Assembly (NCBI GenBank): GCA_002269645.1
Contig: NIVC01001273.1
Coordinates: 1 to 55,136 of the forward strand
Reading direction: 5' to 3'
Origin: Macrostomum lignano
Taxonomy: Eukaryota
Length of the DNA: 55,136 nucleotides
Position numbers and translations under genes: made by a program. Below, piece by piece: positions 3,318 through 55,136 of the stretch. Under the pieces are notes generated by a model. The model had not been told where the DNA came from and made no database searches. It saw nothing but the letters and a program-made list of their open reading frames with translations. The first letter of the stretch is position 1, and each line of letters opens with the position of its first letter.

Positions 3318-22097
<18,780 letters not shown>

Positions 22098-23139
22098 TTT
22101 TTTTAGCTCGTATTGAGGGAGCTAGCAACGACAGCTGCATGGTTGGTGCACAAATATATTCGATGAAAGCCGATAAATCCGGAAAGTCTGTTAAAGCTAA
22201 TTTTAAGCAAGTTTTCTCTGCGAGGAGGCTAATATTTTTATTGGATCATAGGCATCACGTTTTCGGGTTTCGAATTTTGCTCCATTATTAAATTTGTTTT
22301 TTTCGACCCATTACTCATGAATCAGTTTGCAAAGTTCTTTGCTGCTAGATTTAGTAGTGGAAGTGATTATTTTTTAAATAAATTACTTTAACGTAGCTAG
22401 CTAAAATTCGGCATAATATTGCTTATATTCAAAAACAAAGCATACAAAGTATTTTCCTTTGATTATTCTGGTTCCGGAATCACGTCATGAAAATCCTTTG
22501 TTGCAAACTGAACTGGTTATAATTGATTAAAGTATGTTTCAACATTTATTTTTACTGCTGAGGTGAGATTCTTTAAAAAATTATGAATAACTACTAAATT
22601 TAAGCAGTCGGGAACCTAGCTGCATAGCAATATTTTGTGTTTTGTTGTTTTGTTTCATGCAGTGCCAGTCCTACTGTAGTTGTTATCTTGCCTAATTAGC
22701 AAAAATCGTTGAGTAAGAAATCTCAGAACAGTAAATTCCGTCAATATTCGCCGAACATCTAATTTTCGGGCTAATTGTTCCGTTTTTTTCACTTATGCTA
22801 AATGCTTTCTGTTCAGTAAAAGTGTGCTTTTAGTGAAATTAACTTGCATATAAAAATAACATATTTGGTATTGTAATTTGCATGATGTCTTCTAATTGTG
22901 CAATAGCCCAGTGGAGCAATTCATATACGCCCCACTATACATTTTATCCTACGCCCCTTCGATGCGCGTCTAGCGCCCTGGCGCACAATTTGTCCAGTCA
23001 GGGCAACTACGTTTACCCTGCGCCCTTTCGACAGTCGAATAAATAATAACGGGATATCCTATTTATTCTACTTATAGTAGGAAGTAAGTAAATACCGGTA
23101 TATGTATTCACGGGCCATACTAATGGATCCCAGCCTGCA

Positions 23140-23675: not shown

Positions 23676-24204
23676 CAGGGGCGTAGCCAGGAATTTTGAT
23701 TGGGGGGGGCCGTGAGTTAGGGGGCGCCAGCTTCTTATAGGGGGCGCCAGTTTCTTTTAGGGGGGGAGCGCCAGTTTCTTATAGGGGGGGGCGCCAGTTT
23801 CTTTTAGGGGGGCGCCAGTTTCTTATAGGGGGGGCGCCAGTTTCTTATAGGGGGGCGCCAGTTTCTTTTAGGGGGGCGCCAGTTTCTTTTAGGGGGGCGC
23901 CAGTTTCTTTTAGGGGGGCGCCAGTTTCTTATAGGGGAGGCGCCAGTTTCTTTTAGGGGGGGGCGCCAGTTTCTTTTAGAGGGGGGCGCCAGTTTCTTTT
24001 AGAGGGGGAGCGCCAGTTTCTTTTAGAGGGGGGGGCGCCAGTTTCTTTTAGGGGGGGGTGCCAGTTTCTTTTAGAGGGGGGGGGGCGCCAGTTTCTTTTA
24101 GGGGGGGGGCGCCAGTTTCTTTTAGGGGGGGGGGGCGCCAAGGCCAGAGTTGGTGATTGGGGGGGGGCCACGGCCCCCTTGCCCCCCCTCTGACTACGCC
24201 CCTG
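23676..24204. mobile_element. hAT-type MITE with an internal G-rich minisatellite (GGGGGGCGCCAGTTTCTTTTAG)
   Basis: TIRs CAGGGGCGTAG...CTACGCCCCTG; perfect 8-bp TSD AAGCGAAG at 23668-23675 and 24205-24212. Confidence 0.92.
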
Positions 24205-30908: not shown

Positions 30909-33900
30909 TATTCATCCTGTGTGAGCATTTTTGTAAGAATTAGCTGGTAAAATAAACTGAGTCTTGCTTTCAATTCCTTGCAATCAATATACATGTACCT
31001 ATATTTGAAAATGAGGAACCTAATACTTGTGTTGCTTTATTATTGTCAGATTATAGTTTTTAGTATATACATGTTAGGACATAGATAACTTTAATGGAGA
31101 CTCAGATATGAGATTCTAACCGATTATTAGAGCGTGCCAGTCGGTGTCACCCACAAAAAGAATGTCTCTATCTCAATCAGCTTTCGACTTCGAGATTTTT
31201 GAAGGGCGCTTATGCTTTCGCAGTTTTTGTACAGATGTTAAGAAACGGCGAATGCAACTGCTTGTTATTCTGAGTCTGTTTGAAATATCTGATACCATTT
31301 ATTTTTCGTAACTTGTGATACGGTATACATGTATATAATTAAGCCAATATATACCAAAGCTCTATACGAAAGAACAAAGCAAACCAAACAAAGATTTCCT
31401 AGCTCTGCTTCTCCCCTCTTCCCCTTAAGAGTGGTGTGCCACGATTTGCATGGATTTGGCCTTAAAAAATCGGGATACCGAACCGAAGCAACTGAAGCAG
31501 AAATTCGTTTCTGCGTTGTGCCTCTAACGGGCGACAGTGATTAGATTCAAACGGATTTGTTATTAGCTCGACTCGTATATAGCCTAAAGTTTATGTCAAG
31601 ATTTCTAGATTGTATATTGGTATTAATTGAAACGTATATCGTTTCCCACAGCTGTTTTGGAATCATCAATCAGCTGCTTTGATTTCTCGACTCCGCCCCG
31701 AATGCATTTGCCGAAAAAACTACTAGCTTATGCGACTGTGAACTGGCATCATCGATACACAAAGAGACTGAAACCTCGAGAACGCTAGCTATAAGTCCGT
31801 TTTTTGTTCTGCCTTGCTTTCTTGGTTCTGCTTTGTTGAAGGCCTTCCTAATGTATCAAAACCAAGATTTATATCTGTTTAGCTGCATAGCTAACAAAAA
31901 TCGTGGAAACCCATTCTATTCATGGTCTGAGAACCCTGATCATGCATGGACGACTATATATAAGCACCCGGACAGGAAACGGAAAATACATTATTTTTTT
32001 CTGTACAACATGGGGCAAAGTTCCTTTCTGAGGAAGAGAGGAGTGGGGGCCCTTCTCCGCAACACTCTTTCCCTCACGGCATCCCAAACAAGCAAACGCG
32101 TACATATCGCGTTCCAGCCTGAAGCCAAAGTGAGCAAGTGCATGAAAAGACAGTGACACAGACTGTGGGGTTGTACATTGACAAGTGGTTTGAATAAGGA
32201 TAACTGTTGCCTTTTCTCCTCGATTGCACTATAATTTAGTGACTCTAAAACGTTATTTATCTGCATTTTTTCACCAACTGTTTGCTGATTATTTTAAATT
32301 GCCAATCCTGCATAAATAAACAGTGCCGAATTCTGAAATAGTAGTTATTGGCATTGGCATGTCATCAATAAATGAGATTCTGTCTTGCGCTCAAAACTTA
32401 TTTTCCATGATTGATTCTTTTGGTGGCTGAGGAACGGACTGGCTGGGGGAAGAAAGAATGCCCTCATCTTGTACAGGCGGCAATTTCGCTTTCAGTCCAG
32501 TAGAATCTAGGAGTCCATGGATCGTGCCTGGATCAAACAAAGAGGCTGGAAAAAAAACTTTTTTCTTATCGGGGGAGTATCGGACGAGACAGTAGGAACC
32601 TGGTGGCGTGGCAAAAAAGATGTCGGAAGGAGAAGCTCGAGAGGCTAATAAATTAGATTTTTGCTTCTAAATGGAAGAAGCAAAAGAGATAAAGGGTTCC
32701 GAATGCCGTGGGTATCCTCATGCCCATTTCCAAACATATACAATATAGACAGGTAAAGTGAAGTAAAAAAGCCTCTAGGACCATAAAAATGGTTTATCTC
32801 ACCGCTCGATCGATACAGAGCGGGTCTCTTTCTTGGACAGAGCATATGTCCAACAGATACGGCTCTGTTGGACCAATGCTATACTTTTTGCGGCCTCAGT
32901 CATACATATCGGGGGAAGAACCTTCTGTGTTGATTTTTCGTCCCGGCAAGCCTCGAGATTTGGTCTGTGACTCGAAGAATAAGAACAAAGAGGTTCGGTT
33001 GTCTCCAGAGCGGCCAGATGTGGGTCTGCGATCTGTGAAGCATCTGCATTTGGCCCCCTGTCTTTAGCAAACTCAGCATTGCTTTTCCTGTGCCTGGTCC
33101 CCTGGGTCCAGGAAACTGCTTTCTCCTGGTCAAGGAAGCTGTATTAGTAGACTTAAACATGAAATTCTACAGATCACTAGAGCGTATCAGTCGGTGTCAT
33201 CTGTAGAATTTCATATTTGACTCTAGTAAAACAGCTTGGCAATTGCTGATTGATTATCCTGGATTTCCCGTATTTTAATGCATAGAAAATTTTCCGGAAT
33301 CGCCGCCTTGGAATATCTAGAAAGCAGATTAAGCTAGAGACACGATTCTTTCTAGGGAAGATAGGGACTGACACGCTCTAATGATCTGTAGAATCTCATA
33401 TTTGAGTCTTCTAATACAGCTTGGCAATTGCTGATTGATTTTCGCGAATTTCACCATTTGAATGCATTGCAATTTTCTGGAATCGCCGTTTTTGAGTGAA
33501 TATCTGGAAAGCAGATTAAGCTAGAGACACGATTCTTTCTGGGGAAGACAGGGACTGACACGCTCTAATGATCTGTAGAATCTCATATCTGAGTCTTCTA
33601 ATACAGCTTGGCAATTTGTGATTGATTTTCCTGGATTTCCCTTATTTAAATACATAGAAATTTTCCGGAATCTCCGCCTTCGAATATCTGGAAAGCAGAT
33701 TAAGCTAGAGACATGATTCTTTCTAGGGAAGATAGGGACTGACACGCTCTAATGATCTGTAGAATCTCATATCTGAGTCTTCTAATACAGCTTGGCAATT
33801 GCTGATTGATTTTCCTGGATTTCCCTTATTTAAATACATGAAATTTTCCGGAATCTCCGCCTTCGAATATCTGGAAAGCAGATTAAGCTAGAGACATGAT

Positions 33901-36900
33901 TCTTTCTAGGGAAGATAGGGACTGACACGCTCTAATGATCTGTAGAATCTCATATCTGAGTCTTCTAATACAGCTTGGCAATTGCTGATTGATTTTCGCG
34001 AATTTCACCATTTGAATGCATTGCAATTTTCTGGAATCGCCTTTTGAATGAATATCTGGAAGCAGATTAAGCTAGAGACACGATTCTTTCTGGGAAGACA
34101 GGGACTGACACGCTCTAATGATCTGTAGAATCTCATATCTGAGTCTTCTAATACAGCTTGGCAATTTGTGATTGATTTTCCTGGATTTCCCTTATTTAAA
34201 TACATAGAAATTTTCCGGAATCTCCGCCTTCGAATATCTGGAAAGCAGATTAAGCTAGAGACACGATTCTTTCTAGGGAAGACAGGGACTGACACGCTCT
34301 AATGATCTGTAGAATCTCATATCTGAGTCTTCTAATACAGCTTGGCAATTGCTGATTGATTTTCGCGATTTCCTTATTTGAATGCATTGCAATTTTCTGG
34401 AATCGCCTTGAATGAATATCTGGAAAGCAGATTAAGCTAGAGACACGATTCTTTCTGGGAAGACAGGGACTGACACGCTCTAATGATCTGTAGAATCTCA
34501 TATCTGAGTCTTCTAATACAGCTTGGCAATTGTGATTGATTTTCCTGGATTTCCCATTTAAATGCATAGAAATTTTCCGGAATCTCCGCCTTCGAATATC
34601 TGGAAAGCAGATTAAGCTAGAGACACGATTCTTTCTGGGAAGACAGGGACTGACACGCTCTAATGATCTGTAGAATCTCATATCTGAGTCTTCTAATACA
34701 GCTTGGCAATTTGTGATTGATTTTCCTGGATTTCCCTTATTTAAATACATAGAAATTTTCCGGAATCTCCGCCTTCGAATATCTGGAAAGCAGATTAAGC
34801 TAGAGACACGATTCTTTCTAGGGAAGACAGGGACTGACACGCTCTAATGATCTGTAGAATCTCATATCTGAGTCTTCTAATACAGCTTGGCAATTGCTGA
34901 TTGATTTTCGCGAATTTCACCATTTGAATGCATTGCAATTTTCTGGAATCGCCTTTTGAATGAATATCTGGAAAGCAGATTAAGCTAGAGACACGATTCT
35001 TTCTGGGGAAGACAGGGACTGACACGCTCTAATGATCTGTAGAATCTCATATCTGAGTCTTCTAATACAGCTTGGCAATTTGTGATTGATTTTCCTGGAT
35101 TTCCCTTATTTAAATACATAGAAATTTTCCGGAATCTCCGCCTTCGAATATCTGGAAAGCAGATTAAGCTAGAGACACGATTCTTTCTGGGAAGACAGGG
35201 ACTGACACGCTCTAATGATCTGTAGAATCTCATATCTGAGTCTTCTAATACAGCTTGGCAATTGCTGATTGATTTTCGCGATTTCCCATTTGAATGCATT
35301 GAAATTTTCTGGAATCGCCTTGAATGAATATCTGGAAAGCAGATTAAGCTAGAGACACGATTCTTTCTGGGAAGACAGGGACTGACACGCTCTAATGATC
35401 TGTAGAATCTCATATCTGAGTCTTCTAATACAGCTTGGCAATTGCTGATTGATTTTCCTGGATTTCCCTTATTTAAATACAGAAATTTTCCGGAATCTCC
35501 GCCTTCGAATATCTGGAAAGCAGATTAAGCTAGAGACACGATTCTTTCTGGGAAGACAGGGACTGACACGCTCTAATGATCTGTAGAATCTCATATCTGA
35601 GTCTTCTAATACAGCTTGGCAATTGCTGATTGATTTTCGCGAATTTCACCATTTGAATGCATTGCAATTTTCTGGAATCGCCATTTTTGAATGAATATCT
35701 GGAAAGCAGATTAAGCTAGAGACACGATTCTTTCTGGAAAGACAGGGACTGACACGCTCTAATGATCTGTAGAATCTCATATCTGAGTCTTCTAATACAG
35801 CTTGGCAATTGTGATTGATTTTCCTGGATTTCCCTTATTTAAATACATAGAAATTTTCCGGAATCTCCGCCTTCGAATATCTGGAAAGCAGATTAAGCTA
35901 GAGACACGATTCTTTCTGGGAAGACAGGGACTGACACGCTCTAATGATCTGTAGAATCTCATATCTGAGTCTTCTAATACAGCTTGGCAATTGCTGATTG
36001 ATTTTCGCGAATTTCACCATTTGAATGCATTGCAATTTTCTGGAATCGCCGTTTTTGATGAATATCTGGAAAGCAGATTAAGCTAGAGACACGATTCTTT
36101 CTGGGAAGACAGGGACTGACACGCTCTAATGATCTGTAGAATCTCATATCTGAGTCTTCTAATACAGCTTGGCAATTGTGATTGATTTTCCTGGATTTCC
36201 CTTATTTAAATACATAGAAATTTTCCGGAATCTCCGCCTTCGAATATCTGGAAAGCAGATTAAGCTAGAGACACGATTCTTTCTGGGGAAGACAGGGACT
36301 GACACGCTCTAATGATCTGTAGAATCTCATATCTGAGTCTTCTAATACAGCTTGGCAATTGTGATTGATTTTCGCGAATTTCACCATTTGAATGCATTGC
36401 AATTTTCTGGAATCGCCATTTTTGAATGAATATCTGGAAAGCAGATTAAGCTAGAGACACGATTCTTTCTGGGGAAGACAGGGACTGACACGCTCTAATG
36501 ATCTGTAGAATCTCATATCTGAGTCTTCTAATACAGCTTGGCAATTGTGATTGATTTTCCTGGATTTCCCTTATTTAAATACATAGAAATTTTCCGGAAT
36601 CTCCGCCTTCGAATATCTGGAAAGCAGATTAAGCTAGAGACACGATTCTTTCTGGGGAAGACAGGGACTGACACGCTCTAATGATCTGTAGAATCTCATA
36701 TCTGAGTCTTCTAATACAGCTTGGCAATTGCTGATTGATTTTCGCGAATTTCACCATTTGAATGCATTGCAATTTTCTGGAATCGCCTTTTTGAATGAAT
36801 ATCTGGAAAGCAGATTAAGCTAGAGACACGATTCTTTCTGGGGAAGACAGGGACTGACACGCTCTAATGATCTGTAGAATCTCATATCTGAGTCTTCTAA

Positions 36901-39900
36901 TACAGCTTGGCAATTGTGATTGATTTTCCTGGATTTCCCTTATTTAAATACATAGAAATTTTCCGGAATCTCCGCCTTCGAATATCTGGAAAGCAGATTA
37001 AGCTAGAGACACGATTCTTTCTAGGGAAGACAGGGACTGACACGCTCTAATGATCTGTAGAATCTCATATCTGAGTCTTCTAATACAGCTTGGCAATTGC
37101 TGATTGATTTTCGCGAATTTCACCATTTGAATGCATTGCAATTTTCTGGAATCGCCGTTTTTGAATGAATATCTGGAAGCAGATTAAGCTAGAGACACGA
37201 TTCTTTCTGGGAAGACAGGGACTGACACGCTCTAATGATCTGTAGAATCTCATATCTGAGTCTTCTAATACAGCTTGGCAATTTGTGATTGATTTTCCTG
37301 GATTTCCCTTATTTAAATACAGAAATTTTCCGGAATCTCCGCCTTCGAATATCTGGAAAGCAGATTAAGCTAGAGACACGATTCTTTCTAGGGAAGATAG
37401 GGACTGACACGCTCTAATGATCTGTAGAATCTCATATCTGAGTCTTCTAATACAGCTTGGCAATTGCTGATTGATTTTCGCGAATTTCACCATTTGAATG
37501 CATTGCAATTTTCTGGAATCGCCATTTTTGAATGAATATCTGGAAAGCAGATTAAGCTAGAGACACGATTCTTTCTAGGGAAGATAGGGACTGACACGCT
37601 CTAATGATCTGTAGAATCTCATATCTGAGTCTTCTAATACAGCTTGGCAATTTGTGATTGATTTTCCTGGATTTCCCTTATTTAAATACATAGAAATTTT
37701 CCGGAATCTCCGCCTTCGAATATCTGGAAAGCAGATTAAGCTAGAGACACGATTCTTTCTGGGAAGACAGGGACTGACACGCTCTAATGATCTGTAGAAT
37801 CTCATATCTGAGTCTTCTAATACAGCTTGGCAATTGCTGATTGATTTTCGCGAATTTCCATTTGAATGCATTGCAATTTTCTGGAATCGCCTTTTTGAAT
37901 ATCTGGAAAGCAGATTAAGCTAGAGACACGATTCTTTCTGGGAAGACAGGGACTGACACGCTCTAATGATCTGTAGAATCTCATATCTGAGTCTTCTAAT
38001 ACAGCTTGGCAATTGCTGATTGATTTTCGCGAATTTCACCATTTGAATGCATTGCAATTTTCTGGAATCGCCTTGATGAATATCTGGAAAGCAGATTAAG
38101 CTAGAGACACGATTCTTTCTGGGAAGACAGGGACTGACACGCTCTAATGATCTGTAGAATCTCATATCTGAGTCTTCTAATACAGCTTGGCAATTGTGAT
38201 TGATTTTCCTGGATTTCCCTTATTTAAATACATAGAAATTTTCCGGAATCTCCGCCTTCGAATATCTGGAAAGCAGATTAAGCTAGAGACACGATTCTTT
38301 CTGGGGAAGATAGGGACTGACACGCTCTAATGATCTGTAGAATCTCATATCTGAGTCTTCTAATACAGCTTGGCAATTGTGATTGATTTTCGCGAATTTC
38401 ACCATTTGAATGCATTGCAATTTTCTGGAATCGCCATTTTTGAATGAATATCTGGAAAGCAGATTAAGCTAGAGACACGATTCTTTCTGGAAAGACAGGG
38501 ACTGACACGCTCTAATGATCTGTAGAATCTCATATCTGAGTCTTCTAATACAGCTTGGCAATTTGTGATTGATTTTCCTGGATTTCCCTTATTTAAATAC
38601 ATAGAAATTTTCCGGAATCTCCGCCTTCGAATATCTGGAAAGCAGATTAAGCTAGAGACATGATTCTTTCTAGGGAAGATAGGGACTGACACGCTCTAAT
38701 GATCTGTAGAATCTCATATCTGAGTCTTCTAATACAGCTTGGCAATTTGTGATTGATTTTCCTGGATTTCCCTTATTTAAATACAGAAATTTTCCGGAAT
38801 CTCCGCCTTCGAATATCTGGAAAGCAGATTAAGCTAGAGACACGATTCTTTCTAGGGAAGACAGGGACTGACACGCTCTAATGATCTGTAGAATCTCATA
38901 TCTGAGTCTTCTAATACAGCTTGGCAATTGCTGATTGATTTTCGCGAATTTCACCATTTGAATGCATTGCAATTTTCTGGAATCGCCATTTTTGAATGAA
39001 TATCTGGAAGGCAGATTAAGCTAGAGACACGATTCTTTCTAGGGAAGATAGGGACTGACACGCTCTAATGATCTGTAGAATCTCATATCTAAGTCTTCTA
39101 ATACAGCTTGGCAATTTGTGATTGATTTTCCTGGATTTCCCTTATTTAAATACAGAAATTTTCCGGAATCTCCGCCTTCGAATATCTGGAAAGCAGATTA
39201 AGCTAGAGACACGATTCTTTCTAGGGAAGACAGGGACTGACACGCTCTAATGATCTGTAGAATCTCATATCTGAGTCTTCTAATACAGCTTGGCAATTGC
39301 TGATTGATTTTCGCGAATTTAACCATTTGAATGCATTGCAATTTTCTGGAATCGCCGTTTTTGAGTGGATATCTGGAAAGCAGATTAAGCTAGAGACACG
39401 ATTCTTTCTGGGGAAGACAGGGACTGACACGCTCTAATGATCTGTAGAATTTCATATTTGAGTCTACTAATACAGCTTGGCAATTTCTGATTGTTCTTAC
39501 TGGATTTCCCATTTAAGAATTGATGACGACACTCATAAAGCAGAAATTTAAAAAATCATCAAAGTTTCATTTCGTAGTTACCTACTTTCAGTAGCATTTA
39601 TTGAAAAATTCTTGGCTGAAAGATTCTGAAAAAGCTACTTTTTTGCCGAGAATGATTTTGATAACATACGAGCGTATTATTTCTTGAAATGAGGTTATAG
39701 ACTTGAAAATTGTTCAACAAATAAAAATGGAGATCCAGGAACATAAAATTACTAATAATAGACCCTAGACTTATGAAAAGCGTGTTTTTTTACACAGTGC
39801 CCCCCACTCTGCGCCCTCTCGATAGTAAGTAGTACAGTGAAAATTGTGAAAAACTCGGCGTCGAAATTTCGATGTTCTGGCGCCCAGCGCCATCTGTTGG

Positions 39901-39924
39901 ACCGGGCGCCAGTGCACCACTGGG
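30909..39924 (+). repeat. Right-arm macro-unit copy 1 (9016 bp)
   Basis: Starts TATTCATCCTGTG, ends ...CACCACTGGG; ~2.3 kb unique part + satellite array + ~0.4 kb terminus. Confidence 0.95.
33199..39514. repeat. ~184-bp satellite array 1 (~34 monomers, A/B variants)
   Basis: CTAGAGACAC spacing of 180-187 bp. Confidence 0.97.
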
Positions 39925-42900
39925 TATTCATCCTGTGTGAGCATTTTTGTAAGAATTAGCTGGTAAAATAAACTGAGTCTTGCTTTCAATTCCTTGCAAT
40001 CAATATACATGTACCTATATTTGAAAATGAGGAACCTAATACTTGTGTTGCTTTATTATTGTCAGATTATAGTTTTTAGTATATACATGTTAGGACATAG
40101 ATAACTTTAATGGAGACTCAGATATGAGATTCTAACCGATTATTAGAGCGTGCCAGTCGGTGTCACCCACAAAAAGAATGTCTCTATCTCAATCAGCTTT
40201 CGACTTCGAGATTTTTGAAGGGCGCTTATGCTTTCGCAGTTTTTGTACAGATGTTAAGAAACGGCGAATGCAACTGCTTGTTATTCTGAGTCTGTTTGAA
40301 ATATCTGATACCATTTATTTTTCGTAACTTGTGATACGGTATACATGTATATAATTAAGCCAATATATACCAAAGCTCTATACGAAAGAACAAAGCAAAC
40401 CAAACAAAGATTTCCTAGCTCTGCTTCTCCCCTCTTCCCCTTAAGAGTGGTGTGCCACGATTTGCATGGATTTGGCCTTAAAAAATCGGGATACCGAACC
40501 GAAGCAACTGAAGCAGAAATTCGTTTCTGCGTTGTGCCTCTAACGGGCGACAGTGATTAGATTCAAACGGATTTGTTATTAGCTCGACTCGTATATAGCC
40601 TAAAGTTTATGTCAAGATTTCTAGATTGTATATTGGTATTAATTGAAACGTATATCGTTTCCCACAGCTGTTTTGGAATCATCAATCAGCTGCTTTGATT
40701 TCTCGACTCCGCCCCGAATGCATTTGCCGAAAAAACTACTAGCTTATGCGACTGTGAACTGGCATCATCGATACACAAAGAGACTGAAACCTCGAGAACG
40801 CTAGCTATAAGTCCGTTTTTTGTTCTGCCTTGCTTTCTTGGTTCTGCTTTGTTGAAGGCCTTCCTAATGTATCAAAACCAAGATTTATATCTGTTTAGCT
40901 GCATAGCTAACAAAAATCGTGGAAACCCATTCTATTCATGGTCTGAGAACCCTGATCATGCATGGACGACTATATATAAGCACCCGGACAGGAAACGGAA
41001 AATACATTATTTTTTTCTGTACAACATGGGGCAAAGTTCCTTTCTGAGGAAGAGAGGAGTGGGGCCCTTCTCCGCAACACTCTTTCCCTCACGGCATCCC
41101 AAACAAGCAAACGCGTACATATCGCGTTCCAGCCTGAAGCCAAAGTGAGCAAGTGCATGAAAAGACAGTGACACAGACTGTGGGGTTGTACATTGACAAG
41201 TGGTTTGAATAAGGATAACTGTTGCCTTTTCTCCTCGATTGCACTATAATTTAGTGACTCTAAAACGTTATTTATCTGCATTTTTTCACCAACTGTTTGC
41301 TGATTATTTTAAATTGCCAATCCTGCATAAATAAACAGTGCCGAATTCTGAAATAGTAGTTATTGGCATTGGCATGTCATCAATAAATGAGATTCTGTCT
41401 TGCGCTCAAAACTTATTTTCCATGATTGATTCTTTTGGTGGCTGAGGAACGGACTGGCTGGGGGAAGAAAGAATGCCCTCATCTTGTACAGGCGGCAATT
41501 TCGCTTTCAGTCCAGTAGAATCTAGGAGTCCATGGATCGTGCCTGGATCAAACAAAGAGGCTGGAAAAAAAACTTTTTTCTTATCGGGGAGTATCGGACG
41601 AGACAGTAGGAACCTGGTGGCGTGGCAAAAAAGATGTCGGAAGGAGAAGCTCGAGAGGCTAATAAATTAGATTTTTGCTTCTAAATGGAAGAAGCAAAAG
41701 AGATAAAGGGTTCCGAATGCCGTGGGTATCCTCATGCCCATTTCCAAACATATACAATATAGACAGGTAAAGTGAAGTAAAAAAGCCTCTAGGACCATAA
41801 AAATGGTTTATCTCACCGCTCGATCGATACAGAGCGGGTCTCTTTCTTGGACAGAGCATATGTCCAACAGATACGGCTCTGTTGGACCAATGCTATACTT
41901 TTTGCGGCCTCAGTCATACATATCGGGGGGAAGAACCTTCTGTGTTGATTTTTCGTCCCGGCAAGCCTCGAGATTTGGTCTGTGACTCGAAGAATAAGAA
42001 CAAAGAGGTTCGGTTGTCTCCAGAGCGGCCAGATGTGGGTCTGCGATCTGTGAAGCATCTGCATTTGGCCCCCTGTCTTTAGCAAACTCAGCATTGCTTT
42101 TCCTGTGCCTGGTCCCCTGGGTCCAGGAAACTGCTTTCTCCTGGTCAAGGAAGCTGTATTAGTAGACCCAAACATGAAACTCCACAGATCACTAGAGCGT
42201 ATCAGTCGGTGTCATCTGTAGAATTTCATATTTGACTCTAGTAAAACAGCTTGGCAATTGCTGATTGATTATCCTGGATTTCCCGTATTTTAATGCATAG
42301 AAAATTTTCCGGAATCGCCGCCTTGGAATATCTAGAAAGCAGATTAAGCTAGAGACACGATTCTTTCTAGGGAAGATAGGGACTGACACGCTCTAATGAT
42401 CTGTAGAATCTCATATTTGAGTCTTCTAATACAGCTTGGCAATTGCTGATTGATTTTCGCGAATTTCACCATTTGAATGCATTGCAATTTTCTGGAATCG
42501 CCGTTTTTGAGTGAATATCTGGAAAGTAGATTAAGCTAGAGACACGATTCTTTCTGGGGAAGACAGGGACTGACACGCTCTAATGATCTGTAGAATCTCA
42601 TATCTGAGTCTTCTAATACAGCTTGGCAATTTGTGATTGATTTTCCTGGATTTCCCTTATTTAAATACATAGAAATTTTCCGGAATCTCCGCCTTCGAAT
42701 ATCTGGAAAGCAGATTAAGCTAGAGACATGATTCTTTCTAGGGAAGATAGGGACTGACACGCTCTAATGATCTGTAGAATCTCATATTGAGTCTTCTAAT
42801 ACAGCTTGGCAATTGCTGATTGATTTTCCTGGATTTCCCTTATTTAAATACATAGAAATTTTCCGGAATCTCCGCCTTCGAATATCTGGAAAGCAGATTA

Positions 42901-45900
42901 AGCTAGAGACATGATTCTTTCTAGGGAAGATAGGGACTGACACGCTCTAATGATCTGTAGAATCTCATATCTGAGTCTTCTAATACAGCTTGGCAATTGC
43001 TGATTGATTTTCGCGAATTTCACCATTTGAATGCATTGCAATTTTCTGGAATCGCCGTTTTTGAATGAATATCTGGAAGCAGATTAAGCTAGAGACACGA
43101 TTCTTTCTGGGGAAGACAGGGACTGACACGCTCTAATGATCTGTAGAATCTCATATCTGAGTCTTCTAATACAGCTTGGCAATTTGTGATTGATTTTCCT
43201 GGATTTCCCTTATTTAAATACATAGAAATTTTCCGGAATCTCCGCCTTCGAATATCTGGAAAGCAGATTAAGCTAGAGACATGATTCTTTCTAGGGAAGA
43301 TAGGGACTGACACGCTCTAATGATCTGTAGAATCTCATATCTGAGTCTTCTAATACAGCTTGGCAATTGCTGATTGATTTTCGCGAATTTCACATTTGAA
43401 TGCATTGCAATTTTCTGGAATCGCCATTTTTGAATGAATATCTGGAAGCAGATTAAGCTAGAGACACGATTCTTTCTGGGAAGACAGGGACTGACACGCT
43501 CTAATGATCTGTAGAATCTCATATCTGAGTCTTCTAATACAGCTTGGCAATTTGTGATTGATTTTCCTGGATTTCCCTTATTTAAATAGATAGAAATTTT
43601 CCGGAATCTCCGCCTTCGAATATCTGGAAAGCAGATTAAGCTAGAGACACGATTCTTTCTAGGGAAGACAGGGACTGACACGCTCTAATGATCTGTAGAA
43701 TCTCATATCTGAGTCTTCTAATACAGCTTGGCAATTTGTGATTGATTTTCCTGGATTTCCCTTATTTAAATACATAGAAATTTTCCGGAATCTCCGCCTT
43801 CGAATATCTGGAAAGCAGATTAAGCTAGAGACACGATTCTTTCTAGGGAAGACAGGGACTGACACGCTCTAATGATCTGTAGAATCTCATATCTGAGTCT
43901 TCTAATACAGCTTGGCAATTGCTGATTGATTTTCGCGAATTTCACCATTTGAATGCATTGCAATTTTCTGGAATCGCCGTTTTTGAATGAATATCTGGAA
44001 AGCAGATTAAGCTAGAGACACGATTCTTTCTGGAAAGACAGGGACTGACACGCTCTAATGATCTGTAGAATCTCATATCTGAGTCTTCTAATACAGCTTG
44101 GCAATTTGCTGATTGATTTTCCTGGATTTCCCTTATTTAAAACATAGAAATTTTCCGGAATCTCCGCCTTCGAATATCTGGAAAGCAGATTAAGCTAGAG
44201 ACACGATTCTTTCTAGGGAAGACAGGGACTGACACGCTCTAATGATCTGTAGAATCTCATATCTGAGTCTTCTAATACAGCTTGGCAATTGCTGATTGAT
44301 TTTCGCGATTTCACCATTTGAATACATTGCAATTTTCTGGAATCGCCTTGAATGAATATCTGGAAAGCAGATTAAGCTAGAGACACGATTCTTTCTGGGA
44401 AGACAGGGACTGACACGCTCTAATGATCTGTAGAATCTCATATTTGAGTCTTCTAATACAGCTTGGCAATTGCTGATTGATTTTCCTGGATTTCCCTTAT
44501 TTAAATACAGAAATTTTCCGGAATCTCCGCCTTCGAATATCTGGAAAGCAGATTAAGCTAGAGACACGATTCTTTCTAGGGAAGATAGGGACTGACACGC
44601 TCTAATGATCTGTAGAATCTCATATCTGAGTCTTCTAATACAGCTTGGCAATTGCTGATTGATTTTCGCGAATTTCACCATTTGAATGCATTGCAATTTT
44701 CTGGAATCGCCATTTTTGAATGAATATCTGGAAGCAGATTAAGCTAGAGACACGATTCTTTCTAGGGAAGATAGGGACTGACACGCTCTAATGATCTGTA
44801 GAATCTCATATCTGAGTCTTCTAATACAGCTTGGCAATTGTGATTGATTTTCCTGGATTTCCCTTATTTAAATACATAGAAATTTTCCGGAATCTCCGCC
44901 TTCGAATATCTGGAAAGCAGATTAAGCTAGAGACACGATTCTTTCTAGGGAAGACAGGGACTGACACGCTCTAATGATCTGTAGAATCTCATATCTGAGT
45001 CTTCTAATACAGCTTGGCAATTGCTGATTGATTTTCGCGAATTTACCATTTGAATGCATTGCAATTTTCTGGAATCGCCGTTTTTGATGAATATCTGGAA
45101 AGCAGATTAAGCTAGAGACACGATTCTTTCTGGGGAAGACAGGGACTGACACGCTCTAATGATCTGTAGAATCTCATATCTGAGTCTTCTAATACAGCTT
45201 GGCAATTGCTGATTGATTTTCGCGAATTTCACCATTTGAATGCATTGCAATTTTCTGGAATCGCCTTTTGATGAATATCTGGAAAGCAGATTAAGCTAGA
45301 GACACGATTCTTTCTGGGGAAGACAGGGACTGACACGCTCTAATGATCTGTAGAATCTCATATCTGAGTCTTCTAATACAGCTTGGCAATTTGTGATTGA
45401 TTTTCCTGGATTTCCCTTATTTAAATACATAGAAATTTTCCGGAATCTCCGCCTTCGAATATCTGGAAAGCAGATTAAGCTAGAGACACGATTCTTTCTG
45501 GGGAAGACAGGGACTGACACGCTCTAATGATCTGTAGAATCTCATATCTGAGTCTTCTAATACAGCTTGGCAATTTGTGATTGATTTTCGCGAATTTCAC
45601 CATTTGAATGCATTGCAATTTTCTGGAATCGCCATTTTTGAATGAATATCTGGAAAGCAGATTAAGCTAGAGACACGATTCTTTCTGGGGAAGACAGGGA
45701 CTGACACGCTCTAATGATCTGTAGAATCTCATATCTGAGTCTTCTAATACAGCTTGGCAATTGTGATTGATTTTCCTGGATTTCCCTTATTTAAATACAT
45801 AGAAATTTTCCGGAATCTCCGCCTTCGAATATCTGGAAAGCAGATTAAGCTAGAGACACGATTCTTTCTAGGGAAGACAGGGACTGACACGCTCTAATGA

Positions 45901-48778
45901 TCTGTAGAATCTCATATCTGAGTCTTCTAATACAGCTTGGCAATTGCTGATTGATTTTCGCGAATTTCACCATTTGAATGCATTGCAATTTTCTGGAATC
46001 GCCGTTTTTGAATGAATATCTGGAAAGCAGATTAAGCTAGAGACACGATTCTTTCTGGGGAAGACAGGGACTGACACGCTCTAATGATCTGTAGAATCTC
46101 ATATCTGAGTCTTCTAATACAGCTTGGCAATTGCTGATTGATTTTCCTGGATTTCCCATTTAAATACATAGAAATTTTCCGGAATCTCCGCCTTCGAATA
46201 TCTGGAAAGCAGATTAAGCTAGAGACACGATTCTTTCTAGGGAAGACAGGGACTGACACGCTCTAATGATCTGTAGAATCTCATATCTGAGTCTTCTAAT
46301 ACAGCTTGGCAATTGCTGATTGATTTTCGCGAATTTCACCATTTGAATGCATTGCAATTTTCTGGAATCGCCGTTTTTGAATGAATATCTGGAAGCAGAT
46401 TAAGCTAGAGACACGATTCTTTCTGGGGAAGACAGGGACTGACACGCTCTAATGATCTGTAGAATCTCATATCTGAGTCTTCTAATACAGCTTGGCAATT
46501 GCTGATTGATTTTCCTGGATTTCCCTTATTTAAATACAGAAATTTTCCGGAATCTCCGCCTTCGAATATCTGGAAAGCAGATTAAGCTAGAGACATGATT
46601 CTTTCTAGGGAAGATAGGGACTGACACGCTCTAATGATCTGTAGAATCTCATATCTGAGTCTTCTAATACAGCTTGGCAATTGCTGATTGATTTTCGCGA
46701 ATTTCACCATTTGAATGCATTGCAATTTTCTGGAATCGCCATTTTTGAATGAATATCTGGAAGCAGATTAAGCTAGAGACACGATTCTTTCTAGGGAAGA
46801 CAGGGACTGACACGCTCTAATGATCTGTAGAATCTCATATCTGAGTCTTCTAATACAGCTTGGCAATTTGCTGATTGATTTTCCTGGATTTCCCTTATTT
46901 AAATACATAGAAATTTTCCGGAATCTCCGCCTTCGAATATCTGGAAAGCAGATTAAGCTAGAGACACGATTCTTTCTAGGGAAGACAGGGACTGACACGC
47001 TCTAATGATCTGTAGAATCTCATATCTGAGTCTTCTAATACAGCTTGGCAATTGCTGATTGATTTTCGCGAATTTAACCATTTGAATGCATTGCAATTTT
47101 CTGGAATCGCCTTGAATATCTGGAAAGCAGATTAAGCTAGAGACACGATTCTTTCTGGGGAAGACAGGGACTGACACGCTCTAATGATCTGTAGAATCTC
47201 ATATCTGAGTCTTCTAATACAGCTTGGCAATTGCTGATTGATTTTCGCGAATTTCACCATTTGAATGCATTGCAATTTTCTGGAATCGCCGTTTTTGATG
47301 AATATCTGGAAAGCAGATTAAGCTAGAGACACGATTCTTTCTGGGGAAGACAGGGACTGACACGCTCTAATGATCTGTAGAATCTCATATCTGAGTCTTC
47401 TAATACAGCTTGGCAATTTGTGATTGATTTTCCTGGATTTCCCTTATTTAAATACATAGAAATTTTCCGGAATCTCCGCCTTCGAATATCTGGAAAGCAG
47501 ATTAAGCTAGAGACACGATTCTTTCTGGGGAAGATAGGGACTGACACGCTCTAATGATCTGTAGAATCTCATATCTGAGTCTTCTAATACAGCTTGGCAA
47601 TTTGTGATTGATTTTCGCGAATTTCACCATTTGAATGCATTGCAATTTTCTGGAATCGCCATTTTTGAATGAATATCTGGAAAGCAGATTAAGCTAGAGA
47701 CACGATTCTTTCTGGGAAGACAGGGACTGACACGCTCTAATGATCTGTAGAATCTCATATCTGAGTCTTCTAATACAGCTTGGCAATTGTGATTGATTTT
47801 CCTGGATTTCCCTTATTTAAATACATAGAAATTTTCCGGAATCTCGCCTTCGAATATCTGGAAAGCAGATTAAGCTAGAGACACGATTCTTTCTAGGGAA
47901 GATAGGGACTGACACGCTCTAATGATCTGTAGAATCTCATATCTAAGTCTTCTAATACAGCTTGGCAATTTGTGATTGATTTTCCTGGATTTCCCTTATT
48001 TAAATACAGAAATTTTCCGGAATCTCCGCCTTCGAATATCTGGAAAGCAGATTAAGCTAGAGACACGATTCTTTCTAGGGAAGACAGGGACTGACACGCT
48101 CTAATGATCTGTAGAATCTCATATCTGAGTCTTCTAATACAGCTTGGCAATTGCTGATTGATTTTCGCGAATTTAACCATTTGAATGCATTGCAATTTTC
48201 TGGAATCGCCGTTTTTGAGTGGATATCTGGAAAGCAGATTAAGCTAGAGACACGATTCTTTCTGGGGAAGACAGGGACTGACACGCTCTAATGATCTGTA
48301 GAATTTCATATTTGAGTCTACTAATACAGCTTGGCAATTTCTGATTGTTCTTACTGGATTTCCCATTTAAGAATTGATGACGACACTCATAAAGCAGAAA
48401 TTTAAAAAATCATCAAAGTTTCATTTCGTAGTTACCTACTTTCAGTAGCATTTATTGAAAAATTCTTGGCTGAAAGATTCTGAAAAAGCTACTTTTTTGC
48501 CGAGAATGATTTTGATAACATACGAGCGTATTATTTCTTGAAATGAGGTTATAGACTTGAAAATTGTTCAACAAATAAAAATGGAGATCCAGGAACATAA
48601 AATTACTAATAATAGACCCTAGACTTATGAAAAGCGTGTTTTTTTACACAGTGCCCCCCACTCTGCGCCCTCTCGATAGTAAGTAGTACAGTGAAAATTG
48701 TGAAAAACTCGGCGTCGAAATTTCGATGTTCTGGCGCCCAGCGCCATCTGTTGGACCGGGCGCCAGTGCACCACTGGG
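39925..48778 (+). repeat. Right-arm macro-unit copy 2 (8854 bp)
   Basis: Head-to-tail junction CTGGG|TATTCATCC. Confidence 0.95.
42214..48368. repeat. ~184-bp satellite array 2 (~33 monomers)
   Basis: Same monomer. Confidence 0.97.
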
Positions 48779-51700
48779 TATTCATCCTGTGTGAGCATTT
48801 TTGTAAGAATTAGCTGGTAAAATAAACTGAGTCTTGCTTTCAATTCCTTGCAATCAATATACATGTACCTATATTTGAAAATGAGGAACCTAATACTTGT
48901 GTTGCTTTATTATTGTCAGATTATAGTTTTTAGTATATACATGTTAGGACATAGATAACTTTAATGGAGACTCAGATATGAGATTCTAACCGATTATTAG
49001 AGCGTGCCAGTCGGTGTCACCCACAAAAAGAATGTCTCTATCTCAATCAGCTTTCGACTTCGAGATTTTTGAAGGGCGCTTATGCTTTCGCAGTTTTTGT
49101 ACAGATGTTAAGAAACGGCGAATGCAACTGCTTGTTATTCTGAGTCTGTTTGAAATATCTGATACCATTTATTTTTCGTAACTTGTGATACGGTATACAT
49201 GTATATAATTAAGCCAATATATACCAAAGCTCTATACGAAAGAACAAAGCAAACCAAACAAAGATTTCCTAGCTCTGCTTCTCCCCTCTTCCCCTTAAGA
49301 GTGGTGTGCCACGATTTGCATGGATTTGGCCTTAAAAAATCGGGATACCGAACCGAAGCAACTGAAGCAGAAATTCGTTTCTGCGTTGTGCCTCTAACGG
49401 GCGACAGTGATTAGATTCAAACGGATTTGTTATTAGCTCGACTCGTATATAGCCTAAAGTTTATGTCAAGATTTCTAGATTGTATATTGGTATTAATTGA
49501 AACGTATATCGTTTCCCACAGCTGTTTTGGAATCATCAATCAGCTGCTTTGATTTCTCGACTCCGCCCGAATGCATTTGCCGAAAAAACTACTAGCTTAT
49601 GCGACTGTGAACTGGCATCATCGATACACAAAGAGACTGAAACCTCGAGAACGCTAGCTATAAGTCCGTTTTTTGTTCTGCCTTGCTTTCTTGGTTCTGC
49701 TTTGTTGAAGGCCTTCCTAATGTATCAAAACCAAGATTTATATCTGTTTAGCTGCATAGCTAACAAAAATCGTGGAAACCCATTCTATTCATGGTCTGAG
49801 AACCCTGATCATGCATGGACGACTATATATAAGCACCCGGACAGGAAACGGAAAATACATTATTTTTTTCTGTACAACATGGGCAAAGTTCCTTTCTGAG
49901 GAAGAGAGGAGTGGGGCCCTTCTCCGCAACACTCTTTCCCTCACGGCATCCCAAACAAGCAAACGCGTACATATCGCGTTCCAGCCTGAAGCCAAAGTGA
50001 GCAAGTGCATGAAAAGACAGTGACACAGACTGTGGGGTTGTACATTGACAAGTGGTTTGAATAAGGATAACTGTTGCCTTTTCTCCTCGATTGCACTATA
50101 ATTTAGTGACTCTAAAACGTTATTTATCTGCATTTTTTCACCAACTGTTTGCTGATTATTTTAAATTGCCAATCCTGCATAAATAAACAGTGCCGAATTC
50201 TGAAATAGTAGTTATTGGCATTGGCATGTCATCAATAAATGAGATTCTGTCTTGCGCTCAAAACTTATTTTCCATGATTGATTCTTTTGGTGGCTGAGGA
50301 ACGGACTGGCTGGGGGAAGAAAGAATGCCCTCATCTTGTACAGGCGGCAATTTCGCTTTCAGTCCAGTAGAATCTAGGAGTCCATGGATCGTGCCTGGAT
50401 CAAACAAAGAGGCTGGAAAAAAACTTTTTTCTTATCGGGGGAGTATCGGACGAGACAGTAGGAACCTGGTGGCGTGGCAAAAAAGATGTCGGAAGGAGAA
50501 GCTCGAGAGGCTAATAAATTAGATTTTTGCTTCTAAATGGAAGAAGCAAAAGAGATAAAGGGTTCCGAATGCCGTGGGTATCCTCATGCCCATTTCCAAA
50601 CATATACAATATAGACAGGTAAAGTGAAGTAAAAAGCCTCTAGGACCATAAAAATGGTTTATCTCACCGCTCGATCGATACAGAGCGGGTCTCTTTCTTG
50701 GACAGAGCATATGTCCAACAGATACGGCTCTGTTGGACCAATGCTATACTTTTTGCGGCCTCAGTCATACATATCGGGGGGAAGAACCTTCTGTGTTGAT
50801 TTTTCGTCCCGGCAAGCCTCGAGATTTGGTCTGTGACTCGAAGAATAAGAACAAAGAGGTTCGGTTGTCTCCAGAGCGGCCAGATGTGGGTCTGCGATCT
50901 GTGAAGCATCTGCATTTGGCCCCCTGTCTTTAGCAAACTCAGCATTGCTTTTCCTGTGCCTGGTCCCCTGGGTCCAGGAAACTGCTTTCTCCTGGTCAAG
51001 GAAGCTGTATTAGTAGACCCAAACATGAAACTCCACAGATCACTAGAGCGTATCAGTCGGTGTCATCTGTAGAATTTCATATTTGACTCTAGTAAAACAG
51101 CTTGGCAATTGCTGATTGATTATCCTGGATTTCCCGTATTTTAATGCATAGAAAATTTTCCGGAATCGCCGCCTTGGAATATCTAGAAAGCAGATTAAGC
51201 TAGAGACACGATTCTTTCTAGGGAAGATAGGGACTGACACGCTCTAATGATCTGTAGAATCTCATATTTGAGTCTTCTAATACAGCTTGGCAATTGCTGA
51301 TTGATTTTCGCGAATTTCACCATTTGAATGCATTGCAATTTTCTGGAATCGCCGTTTTTGAGTGAATATCTGGAAAGTAGATTAAGCTAGAGACACGATT
51401 CTTTCTGGGGAAGACAGGGACTGACACGCTCTAATGATCTGTAGAATCTCATATCTGAGTCTTCTAATACAGCTTGGCAATTTGTGATTGATTTTCCTGG
51501 ATTTCCCTTATTTAAATACATAGAAATTTTCCGGAATCTCCGCCTTCGAATATCTGGAAAGCAGATTAAGCTAGAGACATGATTCTTTCTAGGGAAGATA
51601 GGGACTGACACGCTCTAATGATCTGTAGAATCTCATATTTGAGTCTTCTAATACAGCTTGGCAATTGCTGATTGATTTTCCTGGATTTCCCTTATTTAAA

Positions 51701-54504
51701 TACATAGAAATTTTCCGGAATCTCCGCCTTCGAATATCTGGAAAGCAGATTAAGCTAGAGACATGATTCTTTCTAGGGAAGATAGGGACTGACACGCTCT
51801 AATGATCTGTAGAATCTCATATCTGAGTCTTCTAATACAGCTTGGCAATTGCTGATTGATTTTCGCGAATTTCACCATTTGAATGCATTGCAATTTTCTG
51901 GAATCGCCGTTTTGAATGAATATCTGGAAGGCAGATTAAGCTAGAGACACGATTCTTTCTGGGGAAGACAGGGACTGACACGCTCTAATGATCTGTAGAA
52001 TCTCATATCTGAGTCTTCTAATAGCTTGGCAATGATTGATTTTCCTGGATTTCCCTTATTTAAATACATAGAAATTTTCCGGAATCTCCGCCTTCGAATA
52101 TCTGGAAAGCAGATTAAGCTAGAGACATGATTCTTTCTAGGGAAGATAGGGACTGACACGCTCTAATGATCTGTAGAATCTCATATCTGAGTCTTCTAAT
52201 ACAGCTTGGCAATTGCTGATTGATTTTCGCGAATTTCACTATTTGAATGCATTGCAATTTTCTGGAATCGCCATTTTTGAATGAATATCTGGAAGGCAGA
52301 TTAAGCTAGAGACACGATTCTTTCTGGGAAGACAGGGACTGACACGCTCTAATGATGATCTGTAGAATCTCATATCTGAGTCTTCTAATACAGCTTGGCA
52401 ATTTGTGATTGATTTTCCTGGATTTCCCTTATTTAAATAGATAGAAATTTTCCGGAATCTCCGCCTTCGAATATCTGGAAAGCAGATTAAGCTAGAGACA
52501 CGATTCTTTCTAGGGAAGACAGGGACTGACACGCTCTAATGATCTGTAGAATCTCATATCTGAGTCTTCTAATACAGCTTGGCAATTTGTGATTGATTTT
52601 CCTGGATTTCCCTTATTTAAATACATAGAAATTTTCCGGAATCTCCGCCTTCGAATATCTGGAAAGCAGATTAAGCTAGAGACACGATTCTTTCTAGGGA
52701 AGACAGGGACTGACACGCTCTAATGATCTGTAGAATCTCATATCTGAGTCTTCTAATACAGCTTAGCAATTGCTGATTGATTTTCGCGAATTTCACCATT
52801 TGAATGCATTGCAATTTTCTGGAATCGCCGTTTTTGAATGAATATCTGGAAAGCAGATTAAGCTAGAGACACGATTCTTTCTGGGGAAGACAGGGACTGA
52901 CACGCTCTAATGATCTGTAGAATCTCATATTTGAGTCTTCTAAACAGCTTGGCAATTTGTGATTGATTTTCCTGGATTTCCCTTATTTAAATACATAGAA
53001 ATTTTCGGAATCTCCGCCTTCGAATATCTGGAAAGCAGATTAAGCTAGAGACACGATTCTTTCTAGGGAAGACAGGGACTGACACGCTCTAATGATCTGT
53101 AGAATCTCATATCTGAGTCTTCTAATACAGCTTGGCAATTGCTGATTGATTTTCGCGAATTTCACCATTTGAATGCATTGCAATTTTCTGGAATCGCCGT
53201 TTTTGAATGAATATCTGGAAGGCAGATTAAGCTAGAGACACGATTCTTTCTGGGGAAGACAGGGACTGACACGCTCTAATGATCTGTAGAATCTCATATC
53301 TGAGTCTTCTAATACAGCTTGGCAATTTGTGATTGATTTTCCTGGATTTCCCTTATTTAAATACAGAAATTTTCCGGAATCTCCGCCTTCGAATATCTGG
53401 AAAGCAGATTAAGCTAGAGACATGATTCTTTCTAGGGAAGATAGGGACTGACACGCTCTAATGATCTGTAGAATCTCATATCTGAGTCTTCTAATACAGC
53501 TTGGCAATTGCTGATTGATTTTCGCGAATTTCACCATTTGAATGCATTGCAATTTTCTGGAATCGCCATTTTTGAATGAATATCTGGAAGGCAGATTAAG
53601 CTAGAGACACGATTCTTTCTAGGGAAGATAGGGACTGACACGCTCTAATGATCTGTAGAATCTCATATCTGAGTCTTCTAATACAGCTTGGCAATTTGTG
53701 ATTGATTTTCCTGGATTTCCCTTATTTAAATACATAGAAATTTTCCGGAATCTCCGCCTTCGAATATCTGGAAAGCAGATTAAGCTAGAGACACGATTCT
53801 TTCTAGGGAAGACAGGGACTGACACGCTCTAATGATCTGTAGAATCTCATATCTGAGTCTTCTAATACAGCTTGGCAATTGCTGATTGATTTTCGCGAAT
53901 TTAACCATTTGAATGCATTGCAATTTTCTGGAATCGCCGTTTTTGAGTGGATATCTGGAAAGCAGATTAAGCTAGAGACACGATTCTTTCTGGGGAAGAC
54001 AGGGACTGACACGCTCTAATGATCTGTAGAATTTCATATTTGAGTCTACTAATACAGCTTGGCAATTTCTGATTGTTCTTACTGATTTCCCATTTAAGAA
54101 TTGATGACGACACTCATAAAGCAGAAATTTAAAAAATCATCAAAGTTTCATTTCGTAGTTACCTACTTTCAGTAGCATTTATTGAAAAATTCTTGGCTGA
54201 AAGATTCTGAAAAAGCTACTTTTTTGCCGAGAATGATTTTGATAACATACGAGCGTATTATTTCTTGAAATGAGGTTATAGACTTGAAAATTGTTCAACA
54301 AATAAAAATGGAGATCCAGGAACATAAAATTACTAATAATAGACCCTAGACTTATGAAAAGCGTGTTTTTTTACACAGTGCCCCCCACTCTGCGCCCTCT
54401 CGATAGTAAGTAGTACAGTGAAAATTGTGAAAAACTCGGCGTCGAAATTTCGATGTTCTGGCGCCCGCGCGATCTGTTGGACCGCCAGCGCCAGTGCCAC
54501 TGGG
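48779..54504 (+). repeat. Right-arm macro-unit copy 3 (5726 bp, shorter array)
   Basis: Same junction; ends CTGGG|AG, then unique sequence. Confidence 0.95.
51065..54095. repeat. ~184-bp satellite array 3 (~16 monomers)
   Basis: Same monomer. Confidence 0.97.
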
Positions 54505-55136
54505 AGCTGATAAATAAAGCCGCTACAACTAAGTTCGAATTAAAATCCATTTTTTTACTATTAGAAAGCCGTTAAAAGTTTTTATGACCAACTTTTTTTT
54601 AAGCTGAGAAGTGCATCTATAGTGAGACTCTGGCGGTTTTTACTTGTCTTTGAATTTGGTAATTGACGGCTTCAGTAAATAAATTTGACTCATGCATAAT
54701 TTTAGCGAGCAGCGATAAGCATGCAACCGTTAAGGGAATGGTCTGGGAGATACAATTGAAGAATAATCTTGTCTAAAGACTCTCAATGTGTAAATTAGCA
54801 AGTGTTTTTACAGTACGCTCGTACGGCACTTTCTTAAAAAGCACACAGTAAAGCAAATACAAAAGTACGGGCGCAAATTTTAGGCCGAAGCAGTTAACTA
54901 TCACTAGTAGTATCTATATAGTATCTGTGATTATATGCAATTATTATTATTAAATACTTTTATTAATACAATAATAAATATATCCCGACTGTAAAAATTT
55001 TAAAACAATTGAATATCGACATCGTAAAAACTTAGTTAAAACGATGTGGCCGTTTAAATACGAAGGGGCTAAATAGATACTAACTCGTCTGTCTTAAAAC
55101 GGAAGGCGTTTAAAAGACGATAGAAAGCGATATTAC

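Follow-up and report, generated by a model that had tools for sequence, protein, structure and literature searches.

Introduction

Hybrid element insertion of Drosophila P elements, like sister-chromatid and reversed-ends transposition of maize Ac, yields tandem direct duplications that are bounded by a transposon end (PMC3744419; PMC2775673). Laboratory crosses have provided ample documentation of such alternative transposition footprints for P and Ac/Ds, but in wild genome sequence they are rarely recognised; for animal elements of the CACTA/EnSpm-Mirage-Chapaev (CMC) type, no such footprint was found in the literature searched. Here we describe a rearranged DNA transposon of Macrostomum lignano, carried on a 55,136-nt stretch of DNA (assembly GCA_002269645.1, contig NIVC01001273.1, positions 1 to 55,136 of the forward strand), which is called the window below. 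As assembled, its right arm is present three times head-to-tail, and each copy ends exactly at the transposon terminus. The arrangement had been noticed in an earlier note made from the sequence alone, in which it was tentatively ascribed to transposase action followed by unequal exchange.

Results

Tandem right-arm units and their joints

A repeat search placed the starts of the three right-arm units at 30909, 39925 and 48779, hence 9016 and 8854 bp apart, as the earlier note had described. The third unit ends at 54504, so the unit lengths are 9016, 8854 and 5726 bp. The whole element as assembled runs from 22907 to 54504 on the plus strand (31,598 bp) and consists of a left arm and the three right-arm units, with both tips present and the flanks CAATAG on the left and AGCTGA on the right. 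Measured from 22907 to the successive right ends, the element is 17,018, 25,872 or 31,598 bp long, which agrees with the three sizes given in the earlier note.

The two internal junctions, at 39917-39933 and 48771-48787 on the plus strand, were read directly and have the same sequence. In both, GTGCACCACTGGG is followed by TATTCATCCTGTG, with the joint at 39924/39925 and 48778/48779; that is, the right tip CCACTGGG is joined to TATTCATCC, the sequence that begins at position 30909. Unit 1 itself is preceded by GCCTTTTC, which runs directly into TATTCATCC, and unit 3 finishes with GTGCCACTGGG at 54504, where AGCTGATAAA follows. The absence of microhomology at the joint was borne out: when CTGGG/TATTC is set against TTTTC/TATTC and CTGGG/AGCTG, the two sides of the joint share no base. 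At both joints, the duplication is thus bounded on one side by the transposon tip, exact to the base, and on the other by an arbitrary target site with no microhomology, as expected of hybrid-end insertion.

The units share one plan, a unique non-coding head of 2.29 kb, an array of 183/184-nt satellite monomers and a tail of 0.41 kb ending at the tip. Unit 1 (30909..39924, plus strand, 9016 bp) has its head at 30909-33198, its satellite at 33199-39510 (35 monomers) and its tail at 39511-39924. The corresponding parts of unit 2 (39925..48778, plus strand, 8854 bp), which is a mosaic, lie at 39925-42213, 42214-48370 (34 monomers) and 48371-48778. Those of unit 3 (48779..54504, plus strand, 5726 bp), which ends at the outer right terminus, lie at 48779-51064, 51065-54091 (17 monomers) and 54092-54504. 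The head contains no reading frame longer than 107 amino acids (aa) and no replication or helicase gene.

Over their first 2244 nt, the heads of the three units differ by no substitution at all, which argues that the triplication was recent. The seven differences in this stretch are all single-base length changes in homopolymer runs, the signature of a noisy long-read consensus. Length differences between the units are confined to the satellite arrays, in which the 183/184-nt monomers show a 369-nt dimer periodicity. By monomer type, the array of unit 1 reads ABCCBCDCCBCDCBCBCBCBCBCBCDDCBCCECBF, that of unit 2 ABCCBCECCBCDCECBBCBCBCBCECDBCECCBG and that of unit 3 ABCCBCECCBCBCECBF; the three strings have common starts and ends and divergent interiors. 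Of the 31.6-kb element, about 15.5 kb is satellite. Incomplete monomers in inverted orientation also lie in the unit head at 31098-31142 and 33136-33192, and a satellite-like 30-mer was seen beyond the element at 4631-4660.

The termini as fixed by relatives

The terminal inverted repeat of the element is just 8 bp long. The left terminus (22907..22914, plus strand) is CCCAGTGG, its sole occurrence on this strand of the window, and CCACTGGG stands at the three right ends, the outermost at 54497-54504. No longer inverted repeat between the arms was detected by a 17-mer search with up to 3 mismatches or by blastn-short on 700 nt; the inverted matches that remain between the arms are partial satellite monomers. 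By calculation, one strand of 55 kb should contain such an octamer about 0.8 times through chance. The tip alone would therefore not define an end, and the ends were validated against relatives.

A homologous left end was found in M. lignano at position 5238 of locus L001, where 4.76 kb separate CCCAGTGG from the transposase gene downstream of it, compared with 4.66 kb in the window. This tip is followed by subterminal motifs common to the window, CGCCCCA and then ATCCTACGCCC. The L001 contig stops before any right end. In a second M. lignano locus, L002, both octamers bracket a transposase gene with 37% identity, 1.2 kb upstream and 0.6 kb downstream of it, and delimit an element of 3720 bp. 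Two metagenome contigs from different samples, L003 and L004, have in common an element with 100% identity over 6520 nt, set in unrelated flanks. On the right, the match breaks off precisely at CCACTGGG; on the left, it takes in CCCAGTGG and a single further base.

From these comparisons we take the mobile unit of the clade to start with CCCAGTGG and to finish with CCACTGGG. The earlier note had staked its reading on the junction coinciding with the true element end. It does: both internal joints fall on the last base of the genuine right end, as fixed across species and by the two insertions of one element. The identity of L003 and L004 in different flanks suggests a family active very recently in a small eukaryote. 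In this 6.5-kb relative (350-6868 in L003, 55-6573 in L004), the second gene encodes 406 aa and runs in the direction of the transposase, a layout that differs from that of the window. The CCCAGTGG tip is restricted to the closer relatives (34-60% identity); it was absent within 10 kb in more distant relatives from a tick (L008) and a springtail (L009).

Beside the left tip of the window element lies AG (22905..22906), which pairs with AG at 54505-54506. This may be a 2-bp target-site duplication, with a 1 in 16 probability of a chance match. Matching flank dinucleotides were not seen in the relatives, which have CT/AC (L002; 8808, 12527), GA/AA (L003) and TA/TT (L004), where the metagenome flanks may mix insertions. 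At the DNA level, only the transposase coding region of the window aligns with M. lignano loci (65.6%), the arms and the satellite not being in common, and L001 is without arm repeats or a comparable satellite. The exact 28-mer of the right end had no match in the metagenome contigs scanned, and a scan of metagenome contigs for the transposase protein gave 153 pattern hits, none of which was confirmed. A look-up of the exact transposase sequence also found no record of it.

A mosaic middle unit

The two junctions are identical, which indicates that they descend from one joint. Between unit positions 2245 and 3500, substitutions group units 2 and 3 against unit 1 at 13 sites, with 1 site to the contrary. 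In the last 800 nt, the right-end variant included, units 1 and 2 are the same and unit 3 differs. A single unequal crossover in a two-unit array yields a middle unit whose 5' part comes from the distal unit and whose 3' part comes from the proximal one. Later copying by unequal exchange, as the earlier note had supposed, is the best explanation of identical junctions together with a unit 2 that is unit-3-like at its 5' side and unit-1-like at its 3' side. In the stretch 800-1200 nt short of the ends, unit 2 stands apart from units 1 and 3, which match; this shows that there was further exchange or conversion in the satellite.

Internal and outer right ends

All three right ends have the intact 8-bp tip and the common 0.4-kb tail. 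The internal ends (39877-39924 and 48731-48778) are identical to each other. The outer right end (54458..54504, plus strand) differs from them by 2 mismatches and 6 gap columns in the last ~45 nt. A GC-rich hairpin lies 12 nt from the tip; it has a cleaner 9-bp stem at the internal ends (-14.4 kcal/mol) than at the outer end (-10.8 kcal/mol). The difference could have come from a different donor copy, from local template switching or conversion, or from a consensus error in the CpG-dense hairpin. A footprint of the joining reaction was rejected as its cause, since the changes begin only 9 nt inside an undamaged tip and reach to 45 nt.

The transposase and a second gene

The transposase gene (27566..29527, plus strand) is one uninterrupted frame of 653 aa. 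It has 52 homologues, the best of which is 60% identical and from M. lignano. In an end-to-end alignment of 11 sequences, D195, D272, C291, C294, H490, H494 and E514 are invariant, and we take these residues to be catalytic. The window transposase thus has the pattern D, D, C-x2-C, H-x3-H, E, which has been described for the EnSpm/CACTA-Mirage-Chapaev-Transib clade (PMC12730594).

The window transposase had no Pfam hit even at E<=1. Among the 11 aligned relatives, weak matches were obtained to DUF4218 (8/11, best 2e-5), Tnp2 (2/11, 0.013) and DUF1258 (3/11, 0.002), and some database homologues carry precomputed PF13960 (DUF4218) or PF02992 (Tnp2). A profile of the 11 transposases matched none of the solved structures. 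The element is provisionally filed as an autonomous cut-and-paste DNA transposon of the CMC type, in an uncharacterised subgroup.

A second conserved gene region (24248..26388) lies on the minus strand, opposite to the transposase, with its reading frame in more than one piece. Two of its translated stretches match the left arm of L001 (~6500-7500) on the same relative strand, with up to 48% identity over 115 aa (E 4e-29). The region, for which Pfam gave no match, includes an 18-nt coding-like repeat at 25927-26319. The left arm also contains a 21-nt minisatellite of about 18 copies (23720..24132, plus strand), each repeat unit of which carries GGCGCCAG, a candidate protein-binding site. The same octamer recurs in the hairpin of the internal right ends.

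Surrounding sequence

The window is eukaryotic, with micro- and minisatellites throughout. Exons of a KCNT/Slack-like sodium-activated potassium channel, with pore and RCK domains, were found at 7753-8208 and 20260-20700 on the plus strand; their best protein matches are 68% identical and come from arthropod or unlabelled sequences. The transposon lies downstream of these exons, probably in an intron or the 3' region of the channel gene. A foldback element of about 1.4 kb, resembling a miniature inverted-repeat transposable element, occupies 10614-11974. Its 59-nt arms are 95% complementary and run ~15 nt further with one small indel, and its interior consists of 23-nt and 18-nt minisatellites. 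C-rich, strand-asymmetric minisatellite blocks with 17-nt and 19-nt periods (GC skew ~-0.59) and an array with an 8-nt period lie at 1400-4000 and 5948-6330. Rfam and tRNA scans of the window found nothing.

Discussion

Origin of the array

The joint lies at the exact tip, lacks microhomology and has a transposase gene with an intact frame nearby, all of which speaks for transposase cleavage of the right end. A candidate source of the same family is thus at hand, with an uninterrupted frame and the conserved residues. We consider it probable that a transposase made the joint through hybrid-end insertion and that unequal exchange followed. The transposase would have cut at the exact right tip, and the tip would have been joined to 30908/30909 within a copy of the same element. 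In the simplest one-step route, after replication, the right end of one sister copy would pair with the left end of the other, and the hybrid pair would integrate into the sister copy at 30908/30909. One chromatid would then hold the left arm, the full right arm, the tip joined to 30909 and a right arm, and the other products, namely the left part as a circle and a chromatid with the empty site, would be lost. Unequal exchange between the two units would later add a third unit with the same junction and reshuffle the satellite arrays.

The claims of the earlier note fare unevenly here. A break made by the transposase is supported by the true end, the intact gene and the lack of microhomology. 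Its proposal that the right end went into the element itself or a sister copy is one of three routes with the same product. Whether by hybrid-end insertion, by whole-copy insertion or by a circle that re-enters, the second copy of the target-site duplication is lost, so that the sequence does not separate these routes, and the hybrid-end route is preferred on grounds of economy, as a single step. The note's suggestion of three usable right ends goes further than the sequence, in which the two internal ends depart from the outer one within the subterminal 45 nt.

Several points weigh against this reading. Right ends derived from a sister copy should be identical, yet about 8 columns differ within 45 nt. 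At this locus, every route loses the second copy of a target-site duplication with the reciprocal product. In the clade, no consistent target-site duplication is apparent, so that the joint may reflect end-joining in place of strand transfer. The mosaic is more complex than one crossover would make it. No second copy of the element from the same genome was recovered in these scans. The assembly carries long-read noise, seen as homopolymer length differences, and the number and order of units rest on the assembler.

Other explanations

A different history, which we regard as possible but doubtful, begins with a whole second copy inserted at 30908/30909. Recombination between the two 8-kb left arms would then have deleted the interval, leaving the left arm, the inner right arm, the tip joined to 30909 and the outer right arm, and unequal exchange would have come afterwards. 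This course yields exactly the observed joint, and the outer ends would still belong to one original insertion, as the AG/AG flanks allow. Large elements are, moreover, large targets for their own family, by the size argument (PMC3952818). Were the second copy from another genomic donor, the difference between internal and outer ends would be a plain copy difference, so a different donor for the right-end variant would favour this history. Such a donor, however, must match 2244 nt of the head and yet differ within 45 nt at the end. Two events are also required before unequal exchange, and neither a second left arm nor an inner left tip has left any trace.

It is unlikely that the array is an artefact of assembly, in which one right arm, or fewer than three, was expanded by reads of other copies, haplotypes or extrachromosomal molecules threaded into it. 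Units of 9 kb that are near-identical at head and tail, with a satellite interior, are the hardest case for an assembler, and the homopolymer length differences show that the long-read consensus is imperfect. Units 1 and 2 are, besides, identical over the last 800 and the first 2244 nt, as if the junctions had been polished from one pool of reads. Nevertheless, an exact joint of the tip to 30909 is not created by collapse or expansion of repeats, and some real molecule must therefore carry it. The arrays differ in both the number (35, 34 and 17) and the order of their monomers, and the right-end variant of unit 3 is anchored to unique flank, which argues that the units are distinct and do not repeat a single consensus.

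Autointegration is quite unlikely as the source. Here the right end of an excised copy would have attacked the copy itself, giving a one-unit circle from 30909 to the tip, which would have re-entered by homologous recombination, perhaps as a concatemer. Autointegration is known to give deletion circles closed by a joint of the tip to an internal site, more often as element size grows (PMC3952818); a one-unit circle would carry exactly the observed joint, and a concatemer would account for both identical junctions together. Against this, an acentric circle must persist and recombine in the germ line, and the unequal arrays and mosaic unit 2 suit unequal exchange better than a concatemer.

An origin without any transposase, through a random break or a replication template switch at the tip, end-joined to a break at 30909, is very improbable. 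The GC-rich hairpin 12 nt from the tip could stall replication, and a target-site duplication is not demonstrable. The break nevertheless lies on the exact last base of an end that is defined independently in other genomes, the intact transposase gene is 1.4 kb away, and template switching and microhomology-mediated joining normally leave microhomology, of which there is none here.

Rolling-circle transposons are known to form head-to-tail arrays of whole elements with a 3' hairpin. That the unit is an independent mobile element of such a kind, deposited in tandem beside an unrelated transposase gene, is next to negligible in spite of the hairpin before its 3' end: this end and the left tip of the element with the transposase gene are inverted complements of each other, a pairing that recurs in relatives, the head holds neither a frame above 107 aa nor a replication or helicase gene, and sequence is continuous from the left arm into unit 1. 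A Helitron-type rolling-circle array was rejected on the missing replication/helicase gene and on termini that form the inverted repeat of a DDE-transposase element.

Also rejected were simple nested insertion, for the window has a single left arm with a single left tip, and what precedes 22907 does not resemble what precedes 30909, and gap-repair slippage, which would not make a joint at the exact tip.

Significance

If the array is confirmed, the locus would show that a transposon can fall victim to its own aberrant transposition and come out of it with several candidate right ends, that a transposon arm can carry along and so multiply a 6-kb satellite, and that unequal exchange takes over fast once two units exist. 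We think it decidedly improbable that the multi-ended state is a recurrent property of the family, its transposase readily joining right ends to internal sites. Were this so, arm arrays or unit circles would multiply the 183-nt satellite, elements would gain alternative right boundaries, and the transposon would be both generator and carrier of new satellite DNA. For an uncharacterised CMC-like clade, the window, M. lignano loci and two metagenome contigs define true 8-bp CCCAGTGG termini, which are useful for annotation. The current understanding of transposition is unchanged by the locus, whose value is for transposon biologists and annotators and which holds no surprise in principle.

Comparison with known systems

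The element adds a new member to a superfamily already known, and its rearrangement is most likely a case, found in nature, of a familiar class of aberrant transposition products. It resembles CMC elements in its residue pattern, its two-gene layout, its short terminal repeats and the weak Tnp2, DUF4218 and DUF1258 matches of its relatives. It differs in its tips, which are 5'-CCCAGTGG...CCACTGGG-3' in the window, L002, L003 and L004. These begin and end CCCAG...CTGGG, with CA set in by two bases, whereas the tips of the clade are mostly 5'-CA..TG-3', a usual but not universal form (PMC12730594). A target-site duplication of 2-5 bp is reported for the group; none is consistent here, where the window alone has AG/AG.

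With the alternative transposition of P and Ac/Ds, the locus is matched by product geometry alone. In the likeness, the paired ends come from no single intact copy, insertion into a sister gives a tandem direct duplication, and its boundaries are an exact tip and a target site; the known systems also give a reciprocal deletion product. In the difference, the inferred target lies inside the element, so that a transposon arm is duplicated instead of flanking host DNA, the junction holds no whole element, and a CMC-type transposase takes the place of those of P and hAT.

Autointegration, as described for Sleeping Beauty, piggyBac, Mos1 and Tn10, likewise joins a tip to an internal site of the same element, with a risk that grows with size (PMC3952818). 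Its known products are extrachromosomal deletion and inversion circles, which are dead ends, whereas a chromosomal tandem array such as the present one needs an extra recombination step.

The later history of the locus is like unequal crossing-over in other tandem repeats and in satellite arrays carried inside transposons: the junctions are identical, the middle unit is a mosaic, and the arrays vary in their interior but not in their first and last monomers. Here, however, the repeat is a 6-9 kb transposon arm that itself holds a satellite, and exchange would have run at two nested levels.

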